This document shows, piece after piece, positions 23,421 through 32,884 of a stretch of DNA of 64,000 nucleotides. The position numbers and the translations under genes were made by a program. Within the stretch, counting starts at the first letter, position 1; every line of letters starts with the position of its first letter. The stretch spans positions 62,001-126,000 of the forward strand of contig OZ218964.1 of the NCBI GenBank assembly GCA_965112735.1. The letters are read 5' to 3'. The notes below the pieces were generated by a model. It saw only the letters and a list, made by a program, of their open reading frames with translations, did no database searches and was not told the origin of the DNA. The stretch comes from Phaeosaccion multiseriatum. Taxonomy: Eukaryota > Protista > Ochrophyta, other classes.

Positions 23421-26389
23421 ATGGAGGAGGAGGAGGAGCAGCAGCAGCAGCAGCTACCGGGAAAGAGGACCGTCCTCGGAAGTATCTCCTCACAGAACAG
23501 CACCATTGGTGACCGGAAGTCCTGCATCGAAGACGAAGGTATTGTCCTCTCCGTCACCCTCCGGCGCCTGCTTCACTCCAAGTTATGCTCTCGCCCCACC
23601 CAACTCTTTCGCCTCCTGGCACACCTATTTTCAGCTTCATTTTGTGTGCCATTCCTGGCCTGCTCTCACCCCCCCCCCTCCTCTCAAAACGCAGTCCCTT
23701 TCCCTTCACTCTCTCTGCCCTCTCCACGTATGTACTTTGGCCGCCATGCCCTCGTGTGTCTTTCATCGGAATCGCCGCATCCGTCCAGCCGCGCGCAGGT
23801 AAAGAGAGACCTTTATGATGTTGTTACGGCTTGCCGCTCTCGCTTCCCAACCCCCTACCACTCACAGGCTTTCGTCTAGGTGCTGTGCGCCCCGCCCCAA
23901 GTGGCCTGTGAACGATGCTCTCACCTCTTTCCCCACTGACACGCCACTAACACAGCCTGCTGCGCCCTCCCCTCCCCCGCTGTACAGCTTGAGGCACGAC
24001 ATGGTGTCGGGTCCCTCGCGCAAAGGGCCACGAGGAGGGGCTTCCCCACAGTGTGGTGAGCTGGAGGGTAGGGGGAAGAGGCAGGGGGCGAGGGATGCGC
24101 TGCAGTGCGCACAAGGCACAAGGCCACCAACCTGCTGGTCTCGTCCGCTTTCTACATCTTAGGCCTAAATCTTACCCTAACCCTTACCCTTACCCCCTTG
24201 CTCCCTCGCTTGTGCCGCGTAGCCAAATCTTCCCGGAGAGGGGTGGCCGACATGGAAAACCGTCAGGGCGGAGGGGGCGCCCCTTCCCCGAGCGGCTCCT
24301 CGGGCCCGTCCTGGCCGCTTCCCGCTGGAGGCTCCCTCCACTCCCTGCATAGCGGGGGGGACGACGACGGAGAAGAGGAGGCGAACGAGCAGGGGAGGGG
24401 CAGGACCACAAGTAGGCTCAGCCTGGGCATGGGCATGCGGCCGTCCTTTGGCAGCGTCAAGAGAAGTGAGTCGCGCCCTTGTCGTCACTCTGTTCCTGTC
24501 CATCACCCATCCCTGCTGCTCACACTTGGTACACAATGCTGCTCCTGCATCACGAACTGCCCAACCGCTGCCGCTCGTCCCCTTTAGTGGCTGCGCGTTG
24601 GCCGGTGTCCCCTGCCCGCAGAGGCGTGGAGGCGGTGGACGGGCCCGTGAGGAACTCCTCTCGCTCGAGTATCTGCTCTCCCTCGGGGAGCGCCCGCCTC
24701 AGCGTGGGGCCGAGAAGTGCGCCTTTCGCGTCATCAGGAGGGCAAGGAGGGGTGGGAGCGATCGGCTCCGCGACAGCAGAGTTCGACGCAGCCATCCGCG
24801 CTTCCGCTGCTGCCTCCCCTCCTTCCCCCCCTCCCCGTGCCACAGATTCAGCAGGAGGGGGGCTTCGCCAGGGAGGAAGCAGCGACAGCCTGGAGGGATT
24901 GAGCTTGACTGCCTCGTCGTCTGAGGCGGATGAAGAGGCCGACCTCGCCGATGAAGAGGACGGCTCTGGGCCCGTTGACACCGTGCCTCTCCGGAGAGAG
25001 GCCTTCGCGAACAGCCGCAGCAAGGGGGCGGAGGGCGAGCTTGGAGGGGGAGGGGGAGAGGGCGGAGAGGGCGGCGCGCTGGTCCTGAGCGACTTGTTCT
25101 CTGCGAGTGGGGTCAACAGTAACAGTGGGGGCAACGAGGGGGCGGAGAGGCCCAGCACGGAGAGCGGGGGGAGCTCGAGTCTGGCGAGCACCGCGCACAC
25201 AGACGCAGAGGGGGCGGTGGAGGTGGAGGCTGAGACGGGAGAAGGACTGCCAAGGGGGGCTGACCCTCACCCTCACCCTCCTCTGCCGCTGCGGAACCCT
25301 CACCCCCCTCTTCCGCCCCCTCCTGTCCCTCAGCGGCAGAGGAGGGCAGCATCCACCGCAGCGCGCTTCCCTCCGAGCCCTCTTGCCCCCCCCAGCCCTC
25401 TCGGCCCGCTCAAACCTCGCACCCCTCGCAGCCCCGGGACAGGCAAGCGGCAGACGTACGGAGGGGGCGACGGAGGCGGCACGACGGACATCGACAGAGA
25501 CATCTTGGCCGACCTCAACCTCTACCGCCTCAACAAACAGGCCAGGGAGGCCCGGGAGGGGGCGGAGGAGGGCTTCGAGTTCGCCCTCGTGCTCAAGAAG
25601 GACAGCGAGTACAGAGAGGCGGTGGACCAACTGCTCAAGGCCATCGAGGTGCGCTGTGCTTAGCGGCAGAGAGGCAGAGAGAGAGTCTGTAGTGTAGTGT
25701 ATTAGCATAGTGTAGTGTAGTGTGCTCTAGTTCCAGTGCTTCTGATGCTGCTGCTGCTCTCTCTCTCTCTCCCTCTCTGTTTGCTTTAGGTGCGCGAGTA
25801 CGGGGCGGAGGTGGTGCAGGGGCTTGAGCAGGGGCAGCGGGAAGACATTCTCAAGCTCAGGGACAGCTTCGGGGGGGGGGACGCGCCAGGCAGGCCTCTC
25901 GCCCTGCCGCACGTGCCTAACATGTTCGACAGCGGCTGTCCCGGGGGAGCCGGGCCGGGGGCGGCCGTGGGAGGAGGCAGGGGAAGAGGTAGGCGCAGCA
26001 GCAGCACCGGCAGCAGCAGAAGCGGAAAGGCACGGATCCCTCGCTCCCCGGGGGGGCGGCCCGTGCTGCAGAGGCGCATGAGCATCATTGAGGACTTGGC
26101 GGAGGGGCAAAACACGCGCATCTCCGATAGGCGCAGGCTAGAGCTACAGCACCGCAACGCACAGCGCTTCGAGCGCTTCAAAGAGCGGCTCAAGGAGGGC
26201 GTCAAGGTGCTGCTACACAGGGCACACCACACCAGCAAGGAGTGCTTCTTGCAGAGCAGGAACGACTGCAGAGAGAGCGTGCAGTGGGCCCCGCTGGACG
26301 CGAGGGACGCCAGGAAGGGCGTTAACATCATGAAGGGCTTCCTCAACATCTTCAAAAAGGTGGGTGCCTTAGAGAGACGTAACTCTCCT

Positions 26390-26424
<35 letters not shown>

Positions 26425-29400
26425 CTCTGCTGCTTCTGACTGTCCTCTGCAACCCCCCCCCCCCTCTGCCCGTCCGCTGCCATCCCTCCCTGCAGGACTC
26501 GGGTGTGCTGCCCACCGGGGACATCATGGAGGTGCTGCACGCCGTGGAGGCGGACCCCTCCCACCCCGGCTTCTACGGCACGCGCAACCTGCGCCTTTCA
26601 TTGGACTACTACGACGCCGCCAGGACGCTGAGCGTGCTCGTGAGGGGCAGGGGCGGTTACGTGGACCTCACGCTCGACCTCGAGTGCTCCAGCGATATCG
26701 ACTATGCCACGCTCTTCCAGGTGTGTGACAGGGGCGGCTTTGAGGAGAGAGGGGGCTTGCTGTCCACGCTCTGTCCTCCCGCTTCTCATGCTGTTTCGTC
26801 GCTCCCACGGTCGTGGTGCCCCCCTCAGGAGGAGGAGGAGGATGATGATGGTGATGATGATGATGATGATGATTATTATTATTATTATTATAATCATTGC
26901 CGGTCCTTGCCTGTCTCCCTCGCTTCTCTTCAGGGCTTTCTCTTGCTCAAGATGAGGCGGGTACAGGCAGAGGAGGAGCAACAGCGACAACAAGAGGAAG
27001 AGGAAGAGCGCCTCCTCGCCGCGCAGGCCGAGCCCACGCCCCGTGTGACCCCCCCCCTCGACGGCAGCTTGGGCTTGGGTCTGTCTGCTTCAGGAACAAG
27101 TGCCCCCAGTGGGGGGGGAGGAGCGCGCTCCAGGCGGGGGGGGGAAGAGACTGCAGCCCCGGCAGACAGGCTGCGGCCTCGCTCTGTGAAGAGGGTCAAG
27201 AGGACGGACGCAACCCCCGCGAAGGTCAAAAGGACGGAAGCAACCCCCGCGAAGGCTGCAGCCAAGACCACAGCCAAGGCCTCTGCTGATGCCGCGGCCG
27301 GCGCAGGCCCTTCATCCTTGAAGAAGAGACTGGCGGAAAGTCTGGCAAGGCCCAAGAGCATGCTGCGTCGAGAGTCCCTCGGCAGCGAATACGACGCCGT
27401 CGCGGTAAGTAAGGAGGAACGGGACCGTGGGACGGGAGGGGGTGTTGAGGGATAGAGTGGGATGTGAAAGAGAAGGAGTGCGGGTGCATCGGCAACAACG
27501 CCCAACAGCACGGCTCTGTGCGCTGCTCACTGTCCGCTATCCACTGTCGAACTTGCTTGCTTGCTTGCTGCGTGGCAATGGCGCTGCTGCAGATGCTGAG
27601 CCCTCCGCGTGGCAATAGAAGCCCCTGTGCGGGAAGCCCTCGCTTGGGCGGAGAGAGGCACCGTATGCCTAAGACCTTCGGTGTGGTGCGTCCGGATAGC
27701 CCGAGCAAAGTCGTGTCTGACGTACTGAAGAGAGCCTCGACGGCGGCGGCCAACGCGAGCGGGGGATGGGGCTGCGGCCTCGAGGAGATGGAGGAGGGCA
27801 TGCGGAGAGCGGCGCCGGGGGGGGGGAAGGAGGGAAGGGGGGAGCTCTCTCGGGCGCGAGAGGCGCGTGAGACGAAGCGACTGCGTGACATGCTGGACGC
27901 GTATGGGGAGGGGGAGGACGACGAGGACGAGGAGGACGGCATCGAGGGAAGCGACAGCCTGGACGCCTTCGGAGCTCAGTGCCAAGTCGAGAGCACACGG
28001 CAGGCTGCGGCGGCCAAGAAGCTCCTCCGAGAGACCCTCGGCGGCGACGAAGGAGAAGAGACGGAGACAGAGGACGAAGAGGAAGAGACGGAAGACGAAG
28101 AGGACAGCAGCGATGATGATGATGGCGAAGACGACTGTGAAGGGGCGCGGTCCATGCTCCGGAGCGGGCTGGAGGGCCTGCACAAGCTCGGCAAGCTCGG
28201 CAAGGACAAAGCCAAGGAGAAGGCGGGACACGTGCGCTTAAGGATGGGACGTATGCCAAACTCGGGCTCCATGTAAGTCACAGTGACGACAGCCCCCCCT
28301 GATCGCGTCCGCCCGCAGCCCGGTAATCGCTCTCTCTCTCTCTCTCTCTCTCTTTGCACCGCACCGCAGGAGGCCCAAGAGTGGCACCGCGACCGCCGTG
28401 ATGGAAAGGGGCGTGGGCCCCCCTCCGCTGTACTTCCTGGGCTGGAACAGTGCCGGAACCAAGATCTGGAGCCGCCTACGCATGGCCTCTCTGCAGGTTG
28501 AGAAGCTCCACAGCCTGCATAGAGACGAGGTCATGCTCAAGATACGCCTCACCAAGGAGAGGCAGGAGCAAGTGGCGGAGGAGATCGGAGTGAAGCTGCG
28601 CAAGAGAGACGGCACCATGGGCAAGTACAAGGCCTCGAGAGAGAGGGCTTTCACGGGGGTGGGGCCGGGCCGCCAATCGGTGTTCCGCACCAGCGAGAGT
28701 CAGGCCTTCATTGACTACGCCGTGCGCAGGTGAGCTCTTGGGCTCGTCATCGATGAAGTGATGACAGGGAGGCTGTTCGGTTCAAACAGCAGCTCCGTTA
28801 GTTGTTTGCTCTCACCCCTCGTGCGGCGCACCGCCCCGTTCCTTCTCCCTGCCTGCCTGACTGCCTACCTGCTGCCTGCTGCCTCCTCTCCCCTCCCCTC
28901 CCACCCACGGAGCAGTAAGGTGCAGGCCGGAGGGGCCATGCTGGACGAGGGAGACGAGCTTGGCAAAGCTGTGGCCAAGCGCCTCCCTCTGCACAACAGG
29001 CAGAAGCTCGACGAGCTGTACCGCGAGTGGGTGACGTATTGGCGGCCCAGTCATCCCCGCCCACGGCCCAGCTTCAAGTCCGCCCTGCCGCGCTTCGTCA
29101 ACGACGTACGCGAGATGCTGGACAATTCGGGTGCCATCCTACGCGGGGCAGGCGAGCAGCCCCTGGAGGAGGTGGCAGACTACTTCGGAGAGGCCATCGC
29201 CTTTTACTTCGCGTGGATGCAGTTCTACACGCGCTGGCTCGTGGTGCCGTCCTTCTTCGGGGTCATCCTCTTCGCTTGCCAGGTGCGTGGGTGAAATGGA
29301 TCGTGTCTTTCCTCCTCCTCCTCCCCTCACTCACGTGTGTGTGTGTGTGTGTTTACCGCAGGTGCGTGCCCGCAACCTGGACCACCCCCTGGGCCCTCTG

Positions 29401-30778
29401 TACAGCGCCCTCATGCTGCTGTGGTCCACGGCCTTCCTGGTGAAGTGGCGGCAGCAGTGCTCTCGCATGGCCTATCGAAGGGGCGTGCTTGACTTTGAGG
29501 TACGTGCGTGGTGTGTATTGGAGGGATAGGGTATGCACAAAGGAGACAGTCGGCAGGCGAGTCTCCCTGTCTCACATATGCCCTCCCTCTGTGCCCCTTG
29601 TCCGACGGCGGCAGGTGGAGGAGCGGCAACGACCCCAGTTCAGGGGAGCGCAGCAGGCGGCGGCAAGGCAAAAGGCCAAGAGGCAGAGGGCGGCCGCGGC
29701 GGGCAAGGGCGCGAAGGGGGCGGCAGCAGCAGCCGACCAGCAGCAGCAGGCGTCCCAAGGGGGCGGGCTTAAGGGGCGGTTGGGAAGGCTGCTCGGCAAG
29801 GCAGCGGCGGCAGCGCCATCAAGCACTCCCAAGGACGAGGGGAAGCTCGAGCAGGGGGAGGCTTCCCACCCCACGGCCGGGGCACGAGTGCGAGTGCCCG
29901 CACCGGCAGCGACGGTAGCGACGGGAGGCACACCCTCCTCACCCCTCGCTGCGAGGGCGGCGGAGTTCGAGGGCAAGGAGGACTTTCTGCTGTACCCGGA
30001 CTGGAAGCGCTGGCTGACGTACTGCTTCACTGTGCCCGCCTCGTTCAGCTTCACCGCCTGCGTCTTGTGGGGCATGGTCAAGAGTGAGTCGTCGGAGGGA
30101 GGGAGGGAGAAGGCTAAAAAACCCTTCATGTGAATGCCGATAGACGCTGACGCTTTCCCGCCCCGTGGCTGCCTGTGTTCCTCCGCTCTCCCCTCTCTAC
30201 TCTCTACTCCCTTGTTCTCTGCTGCCGATAGTCTTCCAGATAAGAGATGTGGAGCCTCCCACAAGCCTTCAGGACATGCAGAGCCTGGGCTTTTGGGGCC
30301 ACCTGCTGCTCTTCCCCTGTCTGTACGGCATCGCAATCCCCATGCTGTACCAGGCGAGTCCATGGGCGAGTCAAAAGTCTGAGCTCTGGTCAGCTCTGGG
30401 GGTGGGAAGAGGGGTGGCGCACGCACACACAGAGTAAAGCCTCACTTCCCTCCCCTCTCAGACAGTAAAGCCTCACTTCCCTCCCCTCTCTCTCTTTCGC
30501 CCCTCCCCCAGGCCTGCAAGGTGATCGGAGAGAAGCTCTGCAACATGGAGAATCACGAGTTTGAGTCTCAGTACCGCAACAGCCTCATCGTTAAGGTGTT
30601 CTCCTTCCGCTTCGTCACCGTGTTCGCGTCCCTGTACTACTTCGCCTTCTGGAGCGATCAGGGCAGCTCCAACTGGAGGATGCTGCGCCTGGCCGCCTCA
30701 CTGCTGACCTTCATGACGGTGGGGCAGTGGTGGTACATGACGTGGATGACGTACATCCCCTACAAGGTTAGCGCGCAC

Positions 30779-30829
<51 letters not shown>

Positions 30830-31466
30830 CGTCTGTTCATTACTTAGTCCCTGCGCAGCTCCTGTGCCGCCCACTCCACTCACTTCGCTGAATGCGCCTC
30901 TCATGTGTGGCAGCTCCAATCTCGCAAGATCACGAAGCTGCGAGAGGCCGTGGCGCAGGAGCACGAGAAGATCGAGCAGCTCATGGAGGGAGGGGGCGGC
31001 GCAGACGGCACAGACGCGGCGGACGAGGCCACAGTGCTCAAAAGAGAGTTCCGCAGAACGCTCCTCAAACAGGCCCGTAGCTCGCTGTGGGAGGAGGCCG
31101 AGCTCAAGGTAAGCACATCAGTATCAACGCGTCCTGCAAGCGCAACTTGGCTCACTTGGCTGCCCCTCCGCCCCCCCCCTGCAGGAGTACGACCTGTTCG
31201 ACGACTACACCATGTCTCTGATCCAATTCGGATACGTGACGCTCTTCTCCATGGCCTTTCCGCTCGCGCCGCTCATCGCCCTCGTCAACAACCTCGTGCA
31301 GGTACACATCACAGGATGGCGACAGGGTGGGAGTGAATCACCAATAGTCTCGGAGCGTGCCCGACCACCATTCCTGTTCCCTCCCCGCCCACTTTCCGCC
31401 CCCCCACCCAGGCTCTCCGCTGTTCCCCCTTCTCCCCTCTCCTAACCCCTCCTCCTTGCGCCGCTC

Positions 31467-31504
<38 letters not shown>

Positions 31505-32884
31505 CTTTCTTTCTCCCTCTCTCCTGTCACTCCTGTCAGATCCGAGTTGACGCGTACAAGCTGTGTCGCACGCGTCGGCGGCCCGTGGCGGTGAAGACGT
31601 CGGGCATCGGCGTGTGGGACAACGTGCTCGAGGTCATGACCTTCGTGGCTGTCATCACCTCGTGCGGCATCGTGGGGAGGACGAGTCAGCAGCTGTGGTC
31701 GTGGCTGCCAGCCCTGGACGACACCTGGAAGGTTGGTTAGGAATGGGAGACGGGAGGGAGGCTTGGCTGGGGCCCTCCGTGGTACCTACCTCCTGCCTGT
31801 CTCGGAGCTGCTGGACTGAGGGCGCCTCCCTGCCTGTCTGGCCGCTGCTGAGCGCCGCTTGGGCTGCACTCCACGAACACGATGGCACTGGCCGATGGCA
31901 GTGGCCGCCTCCCCCCTTCCCCCCCTCCCTCCCTCCCTCCCTCCCTTCCCGTTCATCCTCTGCCCTCTCTATCCTCTCACCCCCCCTCCCTCCCCCCCTG
32001 GACACGTCTGTTGCAGTTTTTCGTGATGGTGATCATCGAGCACGCTATTCTGTTCCTCAAGTACTGGCTCGAGTCCACCGTGCCCAGGGTGCCCCAGAGC
32101 GTGAGTGCATGCCTGTATGCCTGCATGGGGCTCATGAACAAGTGCAAGCGCAAATTACTCCACCAACGTGTTTGTGTTGCTCACCAAGTGCCGCCCCTGT
32201 CTGTTGCCTATATTGCCTATTGTTGACCGCATGACATTCGAGCAGGTGGTGAGGCGCCAAATGCGCGCACGCAAGGAGAGGGAGGCCGAGGCGAAGGGGA
32301 GGAGAAAGTTTTTCGGCGCTGCAGGGGGGGGCGGCAGGAGCAGCCTGGAGGGCAAGAGGAGCAGCGTCAGCGGAGGGGGAGGGCCGGGTATGACGGGGGG
32401 ACGGCGAGGCATGAGGGCCATGGGGCGCAGCCACTCCATGCAGAAGGGCCTCAGCACGCCGCCCAAGGACAAGACGCCAGGACCTGCTGATGCGCTCGAG
32501 CAAGAGGTGGAGCAAGAGGCGGCGGCAGCGGGAGGAGGAGCCGTCCCGTCTATCCCGTCTACGTCTTTGTTCGCCCCCGCTCCCTCTGCAGACGGGCTAC
32601 GCAGAAGGCGCTGCAGCAGCCACAGCCACAGCCACCAGGGCAGCGGTGATGGCGTCGTCGGCGCTGGTGATGGGGGGGGCAGCGAGGATGGAGATGCTGC
32701 TGCTCCCTTGTGGGGGGGGACCAGTCAAAGCATCATAGAAGCGGACTTCGCCGCGGATGACGAAGACAGCGAAGACAGCAGCGGCAGCGGCAGCGAGGTG
32801 GAGGGCAGCGGCAGCGAGGGGGAGGGCAGCAGCGGGCAGCGGCGGCTCGACCCCATCGAGGAAAGCAGCTCAGACTCGGACTGA
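23421..32884 (+). CDS. Anoctamin/TMEM16 family protein with long N-terminus and inserted PH-like domain
   Basis: Motifs QPLEEVADYFGEAIAFYFAWMQFYTRWL, ENHEFESQYRNSLIVKVFSFRF, DDYTMSLIQFGYVTLFSMAFPLAPLIALVNNLVQ|IRVDAYKL..RRP..GIGVW, IEHAILFLK..P..P. Stop TGA at 32882-32884. The 5' exons (23421-, ~23880-, 23988-) are tentative; the alternative start is ATG 24252. Confidence 0.92.

Follow-up and report, generated by a model that had tools for sequence, protein, structure and literature searches.

Can a TMEM16 protein (anoctamin) that has lost most of its acidic Ca2+ ligands still be a functional protein, and would Ca2+ still govern it? This question is raised by an intron-rich gene predicted on the plus strand of the analysed window (about 24252-32884), i.e., the 64,000-nucleotide stretch of contig OZ218964.1 of Phaeosaccion multiseriatum to which all positions given here refer.

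The gene comprises ~2000 codons in ~17 exons. Its 5' part (24252-28272) is a prediction from reading frames and splice signals, whereas the exons from 28370 onward are confirmed by a spliced transcript contig (2803 nt, intron-less, run X5; from another sample and another study of the same organism). All ten junctions compared (28729|28916 to 32100|32246) match this contig, and the reading frame is open through every exon up to the stop codon (32882-32884). The second half of the cytosolic N-terminal domain (28370-28729; X5 contig, 48-52 % identity to relatives) is followed by the pre-TM1 region with TM1 (28916-29282), TM2 (29362-29499, placed by alignment to TMEM16K), both with X5 junctions, and the TM2-TM3 loop with TM3 (29615-30083; reading frame, X5 contig and relatives), the loop containing an Ala/Gln/Gly-rich insert of ~100 residues. 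The TM4 exon (30232-30353; X5 contig, and TMEM16K homology across its downstream junction) precedes a GC-AG intron (30354-30511), where the X5 contig skips 158 bases and its joint agrees with 30353|30512 within the stated slack. TM5-TM6 (30512-30766; PF04547 and alignment to TMEM16K) are followed by the helical extension of alpha-6 with a cytosolic loop (30914-31108; X5 junctions), a region through which one helix of 56 residues runs in a structure model of an ortholog. TM7 with the first half of TM8 (31185-31301), the second half of TM8 with TM9 (31540-31731) and TM10 (32017-32100) are each placed by PF04547, alignments and X5 junctions. The last exon (32246-32884; X5 junction) encodes a low-complexity C-terminal tail of 212 residues, which begins basic, ends rich in Ser, Asp and Glu, and has no Pfam match.

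Membership in the family follows from several lines. Matches to the Pfam Anoctamin family PF04547 score 49.8, 27.0, 60.1, 53.5, 60.9 and 16.2 bits exon by exon and, of the 460 profile positions, cover 1-81 and 183-451; the cut-off of 28 bits is exceeded singly by four exons, namely the pre-TM1/TM1 exon (positions 1-35, 49.8 bits) and the three exons at the presumed Ca2+ site, 30512-30766, 31185-31301 and 31540-31731 (60.1, 53.5 and 60.9 bits, respectively). For the TM3 and TM4 exons, BLASTP gave matches to relatives. An AF2 model of the transmembrane domain of the ortholog P0003 (residues 37-520; not the window's own chain) reached a pLDDT of 95, and its top PDB matches are TMEM16K, afTMEM16, nhTMEM16, TMEM16F and TMEM16A (E down to 5e-25), the best being TMEM16K with a query TM-score of 0.82 at 30 % identity. 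The gene belongs to the TMEM16K/H-like intracellular branch of the TMEM16/anoctamin proteins.

The register of helices TM6-TM8 was fixed by phmmer alignments, exon by exon, to the solved chains of TMEM16K, TMEM16F, TMEM16A and nhTMEM16. The TM6 motif GQWWYMTWMTYIPYK closes exon 30512-30766; DDYTMSLIQFG (TM7) and NNLVQ (TM8) both lie in exon 31185-31301, and IRVD (TM8) begins exon 31540-31731. In TM6, where a first-pass annotation of this DNA had seen neither Asn nor Glu, the alignment indeed places Tyr at TMEM16K N444 (codon 30734-30736) and Met at E448 (30746-30748); a second Asn/Gln is also replaced by Met (30737-30739), and the register is gap-free on both sides (GQ/SQ upstream, (L/I)PY downstream). 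TM7 retains Asp at D497 (31203-31205), and the Met read in place of its second Glu aligns with E500 (31212-31214). The Gln proposed to replace the TM8 Glu corresponds to E529 and is the final codon of its exon (31299-31301), exactly at the splice junction, and the resulting Q|I junction is seen in the X5 transcript at 31301|31540; Asp is retained at D533 (31549-31551), as is the Asn-Asn pair. A splice site that would restore Glu at this junction was also sought, and the sequence contains no usable donor or acceptor for it. Two of the five orthosteric acidic ligands are left (the D497 and D533 equivalents), the number given by the first-pass annotation, and the TM6 Asn is gone too. The flanking motifs, described there as intact, are the same as in TMEM16K (ENH, QFGYV, PLAPL, NN..x.R.DA.K). 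The alignment with TMEM16A, TMEM16F, TMEM16K and nhTMEM16 upheld the losses and offered no alternative acidic ligands in TM6-TM8; compensating acidic residues in these helices were not found beyond those also present in oomycete relatives with an intact main site.

A third site, formed by TM2 and TM10 residues with a role in Ca2+ binding (PMC7786149), lies beyond what the first reading looked at. Its TM2 Glu (TMEM16K E259, TMEM16A E425) is Val (codon 29440-29442) and its TM10 Asp (TMEM16K D615, TMEM16A D884) is Arg (32086-32088). EF-hand, C2 or other Ca2+ sensor domains were not found by Pfam in any exon or in the N-terminal relatives. These observations bear on the idea of a weakened Ca2+ regulation, in which the remaining Asp of TM7 and the Asp, Asn and Gln of TM8, together with backbone or lipid head groups, would bind one Ca2+ at low affinity, or in which a sensor would act in trans. 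Two acidic and two amide ligands are indeed left, and partners might be recruited by the long disordered regions at both termini. However, the losses comprise the TM6 Asn together with three of the five carboxylates (two of these three now being Met), the third site has gone too, a Ca2+-binding domain in cis was not found, and single neutralisations already cripple activation of TMEM16A (PMC7786149); we regard such residual control by Ca2+ as unlikely.

Site loss might have been a peculiarity of this single gene; instead, it proved to be the common state of a large protist clade. The substituted Ca2+ site is carried by at least six related proteins of other algae (62-85 % identity over 37-85 aligned residues of the site-bearing exons, the TM7 exon reaching up to 85 % across algal classes), and the pattern, which related brown and yellow-green algae have in common, recurs nearly residue for residue in Discosporangium, Laminaria, Tribonema and Phaeothamnion as well as two metagenome proteins. 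The Met at the TM6 Glu position is Ile in Discosporangium. In the phylogenetic tree (without Ist2), the algal clade has an SH-aLRT support of 100 % and is nested in an equally supported clade of 35 rows (100 %), 34 of which retain at most three of the five acidic ligands and 33 at most two. Sister subclades contain other neutral residues, e.g., Phe, Ile, Ser, His, Leu and Gln. Among relatives that retain the main site, those of oomycetes are closest, and animal ANO8/ANO10 lie across the main split of the tree from the algal clade. The proteins with a degenerate site make up a TMEM16K/H-like group of photosynthetic stramenopiles and other protists that is separate, old and diverse; within the algal clade, the pattern of the Ca2+ site is conserved rather than decayed.

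Two further explanations can be assessed at this point. The unusual residues, taken alone, would fit a pseudogene or an artefact of assembly or splice modelling. This has virtually no probability left, being ruled out by the intact frame, the ten transcript-confirmed junctions, the agreement of the DNA contig sets (four DNA-type sets, with zero base differences from the window across the Ca2+-site exons) and the orthologs sharing the pattern. Alternatively, the former Ca2+ site may have been re-purposed as a Met/Trp/Tyr-rich pocket that binds another ligand, e.g., a soft metal such as Cu(I), or senses reversible Met oxidation, resulting in a novel mode of gating. Met-x-x-Met motifs of other proteins are Cu(I) ligands; here, a Y-M-x-x-M sequence lies in a Trp-rich stretch of TM6, Met occupies the former Glu position of TM7, and Gln is present on TM8. 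The Ile of Discosporangium at the TM6 Glu position speaks against such a role, and the varied neutral residues of the sister subclades fit packing better than ligation, rendering a new ligand very improbable.

The cytosolic N-terminus of ~1000 residues contains a PH-like insert (26192-26720, plus strand), which is split over an exon ending at 26359, the exon 26496-26720 and a few codons of the exon starting at 26934. The insert is conserved in the NCBI relatives P0235-P0244 and in P0022, P0039 and P0044, but it has no Pfam match, and no PH family of Pfam matches the N-terminal relatives. The AF2 model of the corresponding region of P0238 is of low confidence (pLDDT 57, exceeding 70 in the C-terminal half only). 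The top ~20 PDB matches of this model all contain PH domains, as do nearly all of the top 50; with the PH domains of PLC-gamma/delta, ROCK and BTK, E values are 5e-4 and query TM-scores only 0.40-0.44. These fold matches are taken as a hint, and lipid gating via the PH-like domain, which the first-pass annotation considered possible, is speculative.

Very large cytosolic extensions with a PH-like module would also suit a protein that uses the TMEM16 fold only as membrane anchor, tether or regulatory subunit, its transport activity being lost and its neutral site having arisen as a side effect once the constraint on gating was relaxed. A tethering role is also ascribed to animal ANO8. However, the substituted residues and TM6-TM8 as a whole show strong conservation across algal classes, which does not fit relaxed constraint, and yeast Ist2 is tether and active scramblase alike (PMC12618243). 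A role as anchor, tether or regulatory subunit alone appears to have a small chance.

The explanation we favour, with a confidence slightly above even, is that of a functional, expressed ochrophyte TMEM16 protein which is independent of Ca2+ and most likely acts as a constitutive or otherwise regulated endomembrane lipid scramblase. The two-ion regulatory site is neutralised by the residues on helices 6 (Tyr, Met, Met), 7 (Asp, Met) and 8 (Asn, Gln, Asp), and the third TM2-TM10 site is abolished by Val and Arg. Since the neutral substitutes are conserved across algal classes, their probable role is the ion-free packing of helix 6 against helices 7 and 8, while the long cytosolic N-terminus with its PH-like module may serve targeting or tethering. 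Because the ligand loss is real and conserved, no compensating acidic residue is present and the third site is lost, Ca2+ independence is the most reasonable inference, by analogy with Ist2; in TMEM16A, neutralisation of orthosteric ligands severely reduces activation by Ca2+ (PMC7786149). The same analogy makes a Ca2+-independent endomembrane lipid scramblase or tether the best reading of the protein. Counting against it, the two Asp, one Asn and one Gln that are left could weakly bind a cation, and neutralising mutations of TMEM16A lower Ca2+ sensitivity without by themselves giving constitutive activity. Moreover, the Lys by which Ist2 mimics Ca2+ is not reproduced, so that an open groove is not guaranteed in the algal protein.

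TMEM16 proteins are usually called Ca2+-activated, and a 2018 survey of the superfamily reported good conservation of the Ca2+ site in its ANO family. The group to which the present gene belongs gave up this site, and here the third site as well. Ist2 is the only characterised TMEM16 protein lacking the Ca2+ site in the literature searched, in which no report on stramenopile or algal anoctamins without the site was found. If the algal proteins are indeed constitutive scramblases, they would represent a second natural way to hold helix 6 without Ca2+ and inform the understanding of TMEM16 gating. Orthologs in culturable algae, e.g., Tribonema and Laminaria, make this a clear and testable candidate.

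Of the solved structures, that of human TMEM16K (anoctamin-10; PDB 5oc9, 6r7x), a Ca2+-activated lipid scramblase of the ER, matches the TM5-6, TM8-9, TM2 and TM10 exons best. In TMEM16K, the N/E, D/E, E/D site is complete and the third site (E259/D615) is present, whereas the algal protein has other residues in place of three of the five orthosteric carboxylates, of the TM6 Asn and of both carboxylates of the third site; it also differs by its ~1000-residue cytosolic N-terminus with the PH-like insert. The closest named relatives are the anoctamins of oomycetes (Phytophthora, Pythium, Plasmopara; 36-40 % identity to the ortholog P0003). These likewise lack the third site (Ile/Leu and Ser/Ala), but most of them keep the full orthosteric site (K-N-E / D-E / N-E-D), parts of which were lost independently in a few, e.g., in Albugo and Lagenidium. 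Paralog subclades of protists with degenerate sites, e.g., many metagenome proteins and the diatom MMETSP/Corethron cluster P0157, fall into the 35-row clade together with the algal proteins. They have the GQWW/AHWW signature of TM6 and the loss of the TM8 and TM7 Glu in common with them, and some have the PH-like N-terminal segment (P0022, P0039, P0044); they differ in their neutral residues, of which every subclade has a different set, and in the TM8 Asp, which several have lost as well.

The functional precedent is Ist2 of yeast (PDB 9hhe, 9qja), a constitutively active ER scramblase and ER-PM tether in which three acidic ligands are substituted (PMC12618243; PMC13286939). Both proteins have a TMEM16K/H-like transmembrane domain, a degenerate Ca2+ site with three acidic ligands substituted and large non-membrane extensions. 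For the TM7 exon, however, Ist2 chains match more weakly than those of TMEM16F, nhTMEM16, TMEM16A, afTMEM16 and TMEM16K, and since the closest named relatives of the algal protein are oomycete proteins with an intact site, the site losses in fungi (Ist2) and stramenopiles were probably independent. Tethering by Ist2 involves a long disordered C-terminal linker with a membrane-binding polybasic cluster at its end, whereas the tail of the algal protein has an acidic end and its candidate targeting module lies at the N-terminus. Finally, the TM6 Glu is retained in Ist2, where the TM7 Glu position is occupied by a Lys that forms salt bridges with this TM6 Glu and the TM8 Asp, thereby mimicking Ca2+; with Met at the TM6 and TM7 Glu positions and Gln at that of TM8, no such mimic is possible in the algal protein, where the solution of the group consists of hydrophobic or neutral residues rather than a lysine salt bridge.

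The TMEM16/anoctamin domain is encoded by the 3' two-thirds of one long gene on the plus strand (approximately 24252-32884), in GC-rich eukaryotic DNA (57-65 %) with short introns containing many CT and TCTG repeats. According to the exon model, for which splice signals and homology were combined with the reading frames, the plus-strand exons from 28370 onward comprise: (i) the second half of the N-terminal cytosolic domain (28370-28729), (ii) TM1 (28916-29282), TM2 (29362-29499), a loop with a ~100-residue low-complexity insert followed by TM3 (29615-30083), and TM4 (30232-30353), (iii) TM5-TM6 (30512-30766), an exon preceding that of TM7 (30914-31108), TM7 with the first half of TM8 (31185-31301), and the remainder of TM8 with TM9 (31540-31731), as well as (iv) TM10 (32017-32100) and a 212-residue tail with the stop codon (32246-32884). 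Matches of single exons to the Pfam Anoctamin profile (PF04547) follow the correct profile order, four exons individually exceeding the family cut-off.

Six public sequencing runs contain this stretch, four of which were compared with the window: X1-X3 from one sample, and X5 from a different sample and study of the same organism. Contigs of X1-X3 are genomic and colinear with the window, with zero base differences in the site-bearing exons; all these short-read contigs break at the intronic (TCTG)n microsatellite (30780-30830) and (CT)n run (31470-31505). X5 contains a 2803-nt contig lacking all introns predicted across the compared stretch, with ten junctions (28729/28916, 29282/29362, 29499/29615, 30083/30232, 30353/30512, 30766/30914, 31108/31185, 31301/31540, 31731/32017 and 32100/32246, plus strand). 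Since this contig skips every predicted intron, transcription of the gene and the modelled splicing are both confirmed. In X5, the Gln codon closing exon 31185-31301 is immediately followed by Ile-Arg-Val-Asp of the following exon, and a pseudogene or artefact as source of the residue losses described below is extremely improbable. In the contig alignment, the ends of intron 30354-30511 read CC..CC with a slack of six bases; a shift of +4 yields GC..AG and an exact skip of 158 bases, and the X5 contig confirms this GC-AG intron (donor cag/gcgagt), within which a ~30-bp direct duplication (agtaaagcctcacttccctcccctct, two copies, ~30434-30490) is found. At position 29757, in the low-complexity insert of the TM2-TM3 loop, the A of the window is a C in the X5 contig (Gln, caa, to Pro, cca), probably reflecting a strain or allele difference between the two samples.

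A fold of the TM domain was predicted (AF2, 83-row alignment) for residues 37-520 of the metagenome ortholog P0003, standing in for the chain encoded in the window. The model (pLDDT 95, pTM 0.91), whose conformation is not readable as open or closed, displays TM6 and its cytosolic extension as one unbroken helix of 56 residues. TMEM16K structures rank first in Foldseek (E 5e-25, query TM-score 0.82, 30 % identity); afTMEM16, TMEM16F, nhTMEM16 and TMEM16A come next. The sequence identifies the protein as a TMEM16, as does, via the modelled ortholog, the fold.

The first-pass annotation had described the loss of most Ca2+ ligands in TM6-TM8, and exon-wise phmmer alignment to solved TMEM16 structures bears this out in every detail. 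In human TMEM16K numbering (plus-strand codons), N444 and E448 of TM6 are replaced by Tyr (30734-36) and Met (30746-48), E500 of TM7 by Met (31212-14) and E529 of TM8 by Gln (31299-31301), while D497 of TM7 (31203-05) and D533 of TM8 (31549-51) are kept. The position following the TM6 Asn (Gln in TMEM16K, a second Asn in TMEM16A) is Met, and the Asn-Asn of TM8 is retained. The TM6 alignment is free of gaps, with anchors upstream (GQ/SQ) and downstream ((L/I)PY). The third Ca2+ site, formed between TM2 and TM10, is likewise lost: TMEM16K E259 in TM2 (TMEM16A E425) is Val (29440-42) and D615 in TM10 (TMEM16A D884) is Arg (32086-88), positions with a third-site role in TMEM16A (PMC7786149). The TM10 exon alone matches the PDB weakly (E 0.7), and Pfam and ortholog alignments give the identical register. 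Judged from its sequence, the protein fails the best-known functional hallmark of TMEM16, the Ca2+ site. Residual low-affinity or trans-acting Ca2+ control, for which the two kept Asp residues might be invoked, appears rather unlikely; the alignment revealed no new acidic residues in TM6-TM8 relative to intact-site relatives, and in none of the exons did Pfam detect an EF-hand, a C2 or any other domain besides Anoctamin.

Relatives were collected by exhaustive phmmer with the TM5-TM6 exon and by word-based search with P0003, the best full-domain match. The closest named family members are from ochrophyte algae. Phaeothamnion confervicola (P0002, P0216), Tribonema gayanum (P0009, P0152), Laminaria digitata (P0217) and the metagenome proteins P0003 and P0007 share the pattern Y-M-M / D-M / N-Q-D, with Y-M-I in place of Y-M-M in Discosporangium mesarthrocarpum (P0174). 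In all of them, the third-site position of TM2 is Val, Ile or Leu and that of TM10 is Arg. Since this pattern and a high identity to the window exons (TM5-6 57-71 %, TM7 74-85 %, TM8-9 61-71 %) are common to these algal relatives, the substituted residues are constrained rather than drifting. Re-purposing of the Met-rich site for another ligand or redox function is regarded as very improbable. Among the related proteins, P0001 (2374 aa) contains three TM7-TM8 motif pairs (at ~275, 1393 and 2178), to be explained either by tandem genes fused during prediction or by a protein that truly has three domains.

A tree of 102 domain sequences was inferred by a quick maximum-likelihood search (root arbitrary); in it, the algal pattern-sharing clade (SH-aLRT 100 %) is nested in a 35-row clade of mostly metagenome sequences (SH-aLRT 100 %). 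At most two of the five acidic ligands are present in 33 rows of the latter and at most three in 34, compared to four or five in 52 of 63 scorable rows outside; since sequences were chosen for their resemblance to this gene, with no more than two kept per pattern, these counts describe the tree and not natural frequencies. Other subclades, one including a diatom cluster (MMETSP/Corethron) and the others environmental eukaryotes, use different neutral residues. The nearest named relatives with an intact orthosteric site are oomycete proteins (K-N-E / D-E / N-E-D), already without the third site. Independent site losses are scattered elsewhere in the tree. The site is independently altered in the oomycete anoctamins P0212, P0084 (Albugo) and P0035 (Lagenidium); in those of Albugo, the Glu positions of TM8 and TM6 hold Lys and Leu, respectively, recalling the lysine solution of Ist2. 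Rather than being a unique oddity, the gene belongs to a sizeable TMEM16 radiation that is devoid of the Ca2+ site and uncharacterised.

Upstream of 28370, where support by the spliced contig stops, exons are predictions only. TM1 is preceded by ~1000 mainly low-complexity residues. A conserved segment (26192-26359 and 26496-26720, continuing into the 26934 exon) interrupts the TMEM16 cytosolic domain and recurs in NCBI proteins P0235-P0244 and in P0022, P0039 and P0044 of a sister degenerate-site subclade, and is therefore older than the split of these paralogs. Its AF2 model (on P0238:392-548) has a pLDDT of 57, the C-terminal half alone exceeding 70. PH domains are present in each of the top ~20 PDB matches and in nearly all of the top 50 (PLC-gamma, PLC-delta, ROCK, BTK; E 5e-4, query TM-score 0.40-0.44), rendering a PH-like nature plausible, though not established. 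The first strand pair is basic and His/Arg-rich (e.g., V-R-R-H-R-A-H-H-R in NCBI relatives). A (GAT)n then (TAT)n run (26840-26900), lying outside the gene model in the intron that separates the exon ending at 26720 from that starting at 26934, looks in-frame and would read as poly-Asp followed by poly-Tyr.

Characterised relatives in or near the branch, i.e., TMEM16K, nhTMEM16, afTMEM16 (fungal), Ist2 and Dictyostelium TMEM16, are scramblases, so a Ca2+-independent lipid scramblase is the default reading. We modestly favour such a scramblase of endomembranes, possibly with an ion leak, with targeting or tethering as the presumed task of its N-terminal region. A transport-dead tether or regulator is rather unlikely. 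In canonical TMEM16 proteins, Ca2+ is held by five carboxylates; once bound, it makes the inner half of helix 6 rigid against helices 7/8, thereby opening the groove (PMC12618243, PMC13286939), and neutralisation of orthosteric ligands strongly lowers Ca2+ activation (PMC7786149). With three carboxylates and the Asn exchanged for Met, Met, Gln and Tyr, the electrostatic repulsion normally relieved by Ca2+ is largely gone, and the conserved hydrophobic side chains probably mediate packing between helix 6 and helices 7/8.

Ca2+-site residues were reported to be well conserved across the ANO family in a 2018 survey of the superfamily (PMC5868767), and we found no literature on stramenopile-algal TMEM16 proteins or their missing Ca2+ site. 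A TMEM16 without this site has a precedent in Ist2, a constitutive scramblase with three substituted ligands and a Lys in place of the ion (PMC12618243). Probable independent origin, different chemistry and breadth of the clade merit experiment. The degenerate site resembles that of Ist2 in a broad sense only: its loss probably arose independently, and the algal protein has neither the Lys salt bridge nor the C-terminal polybasic tether of Ist2.
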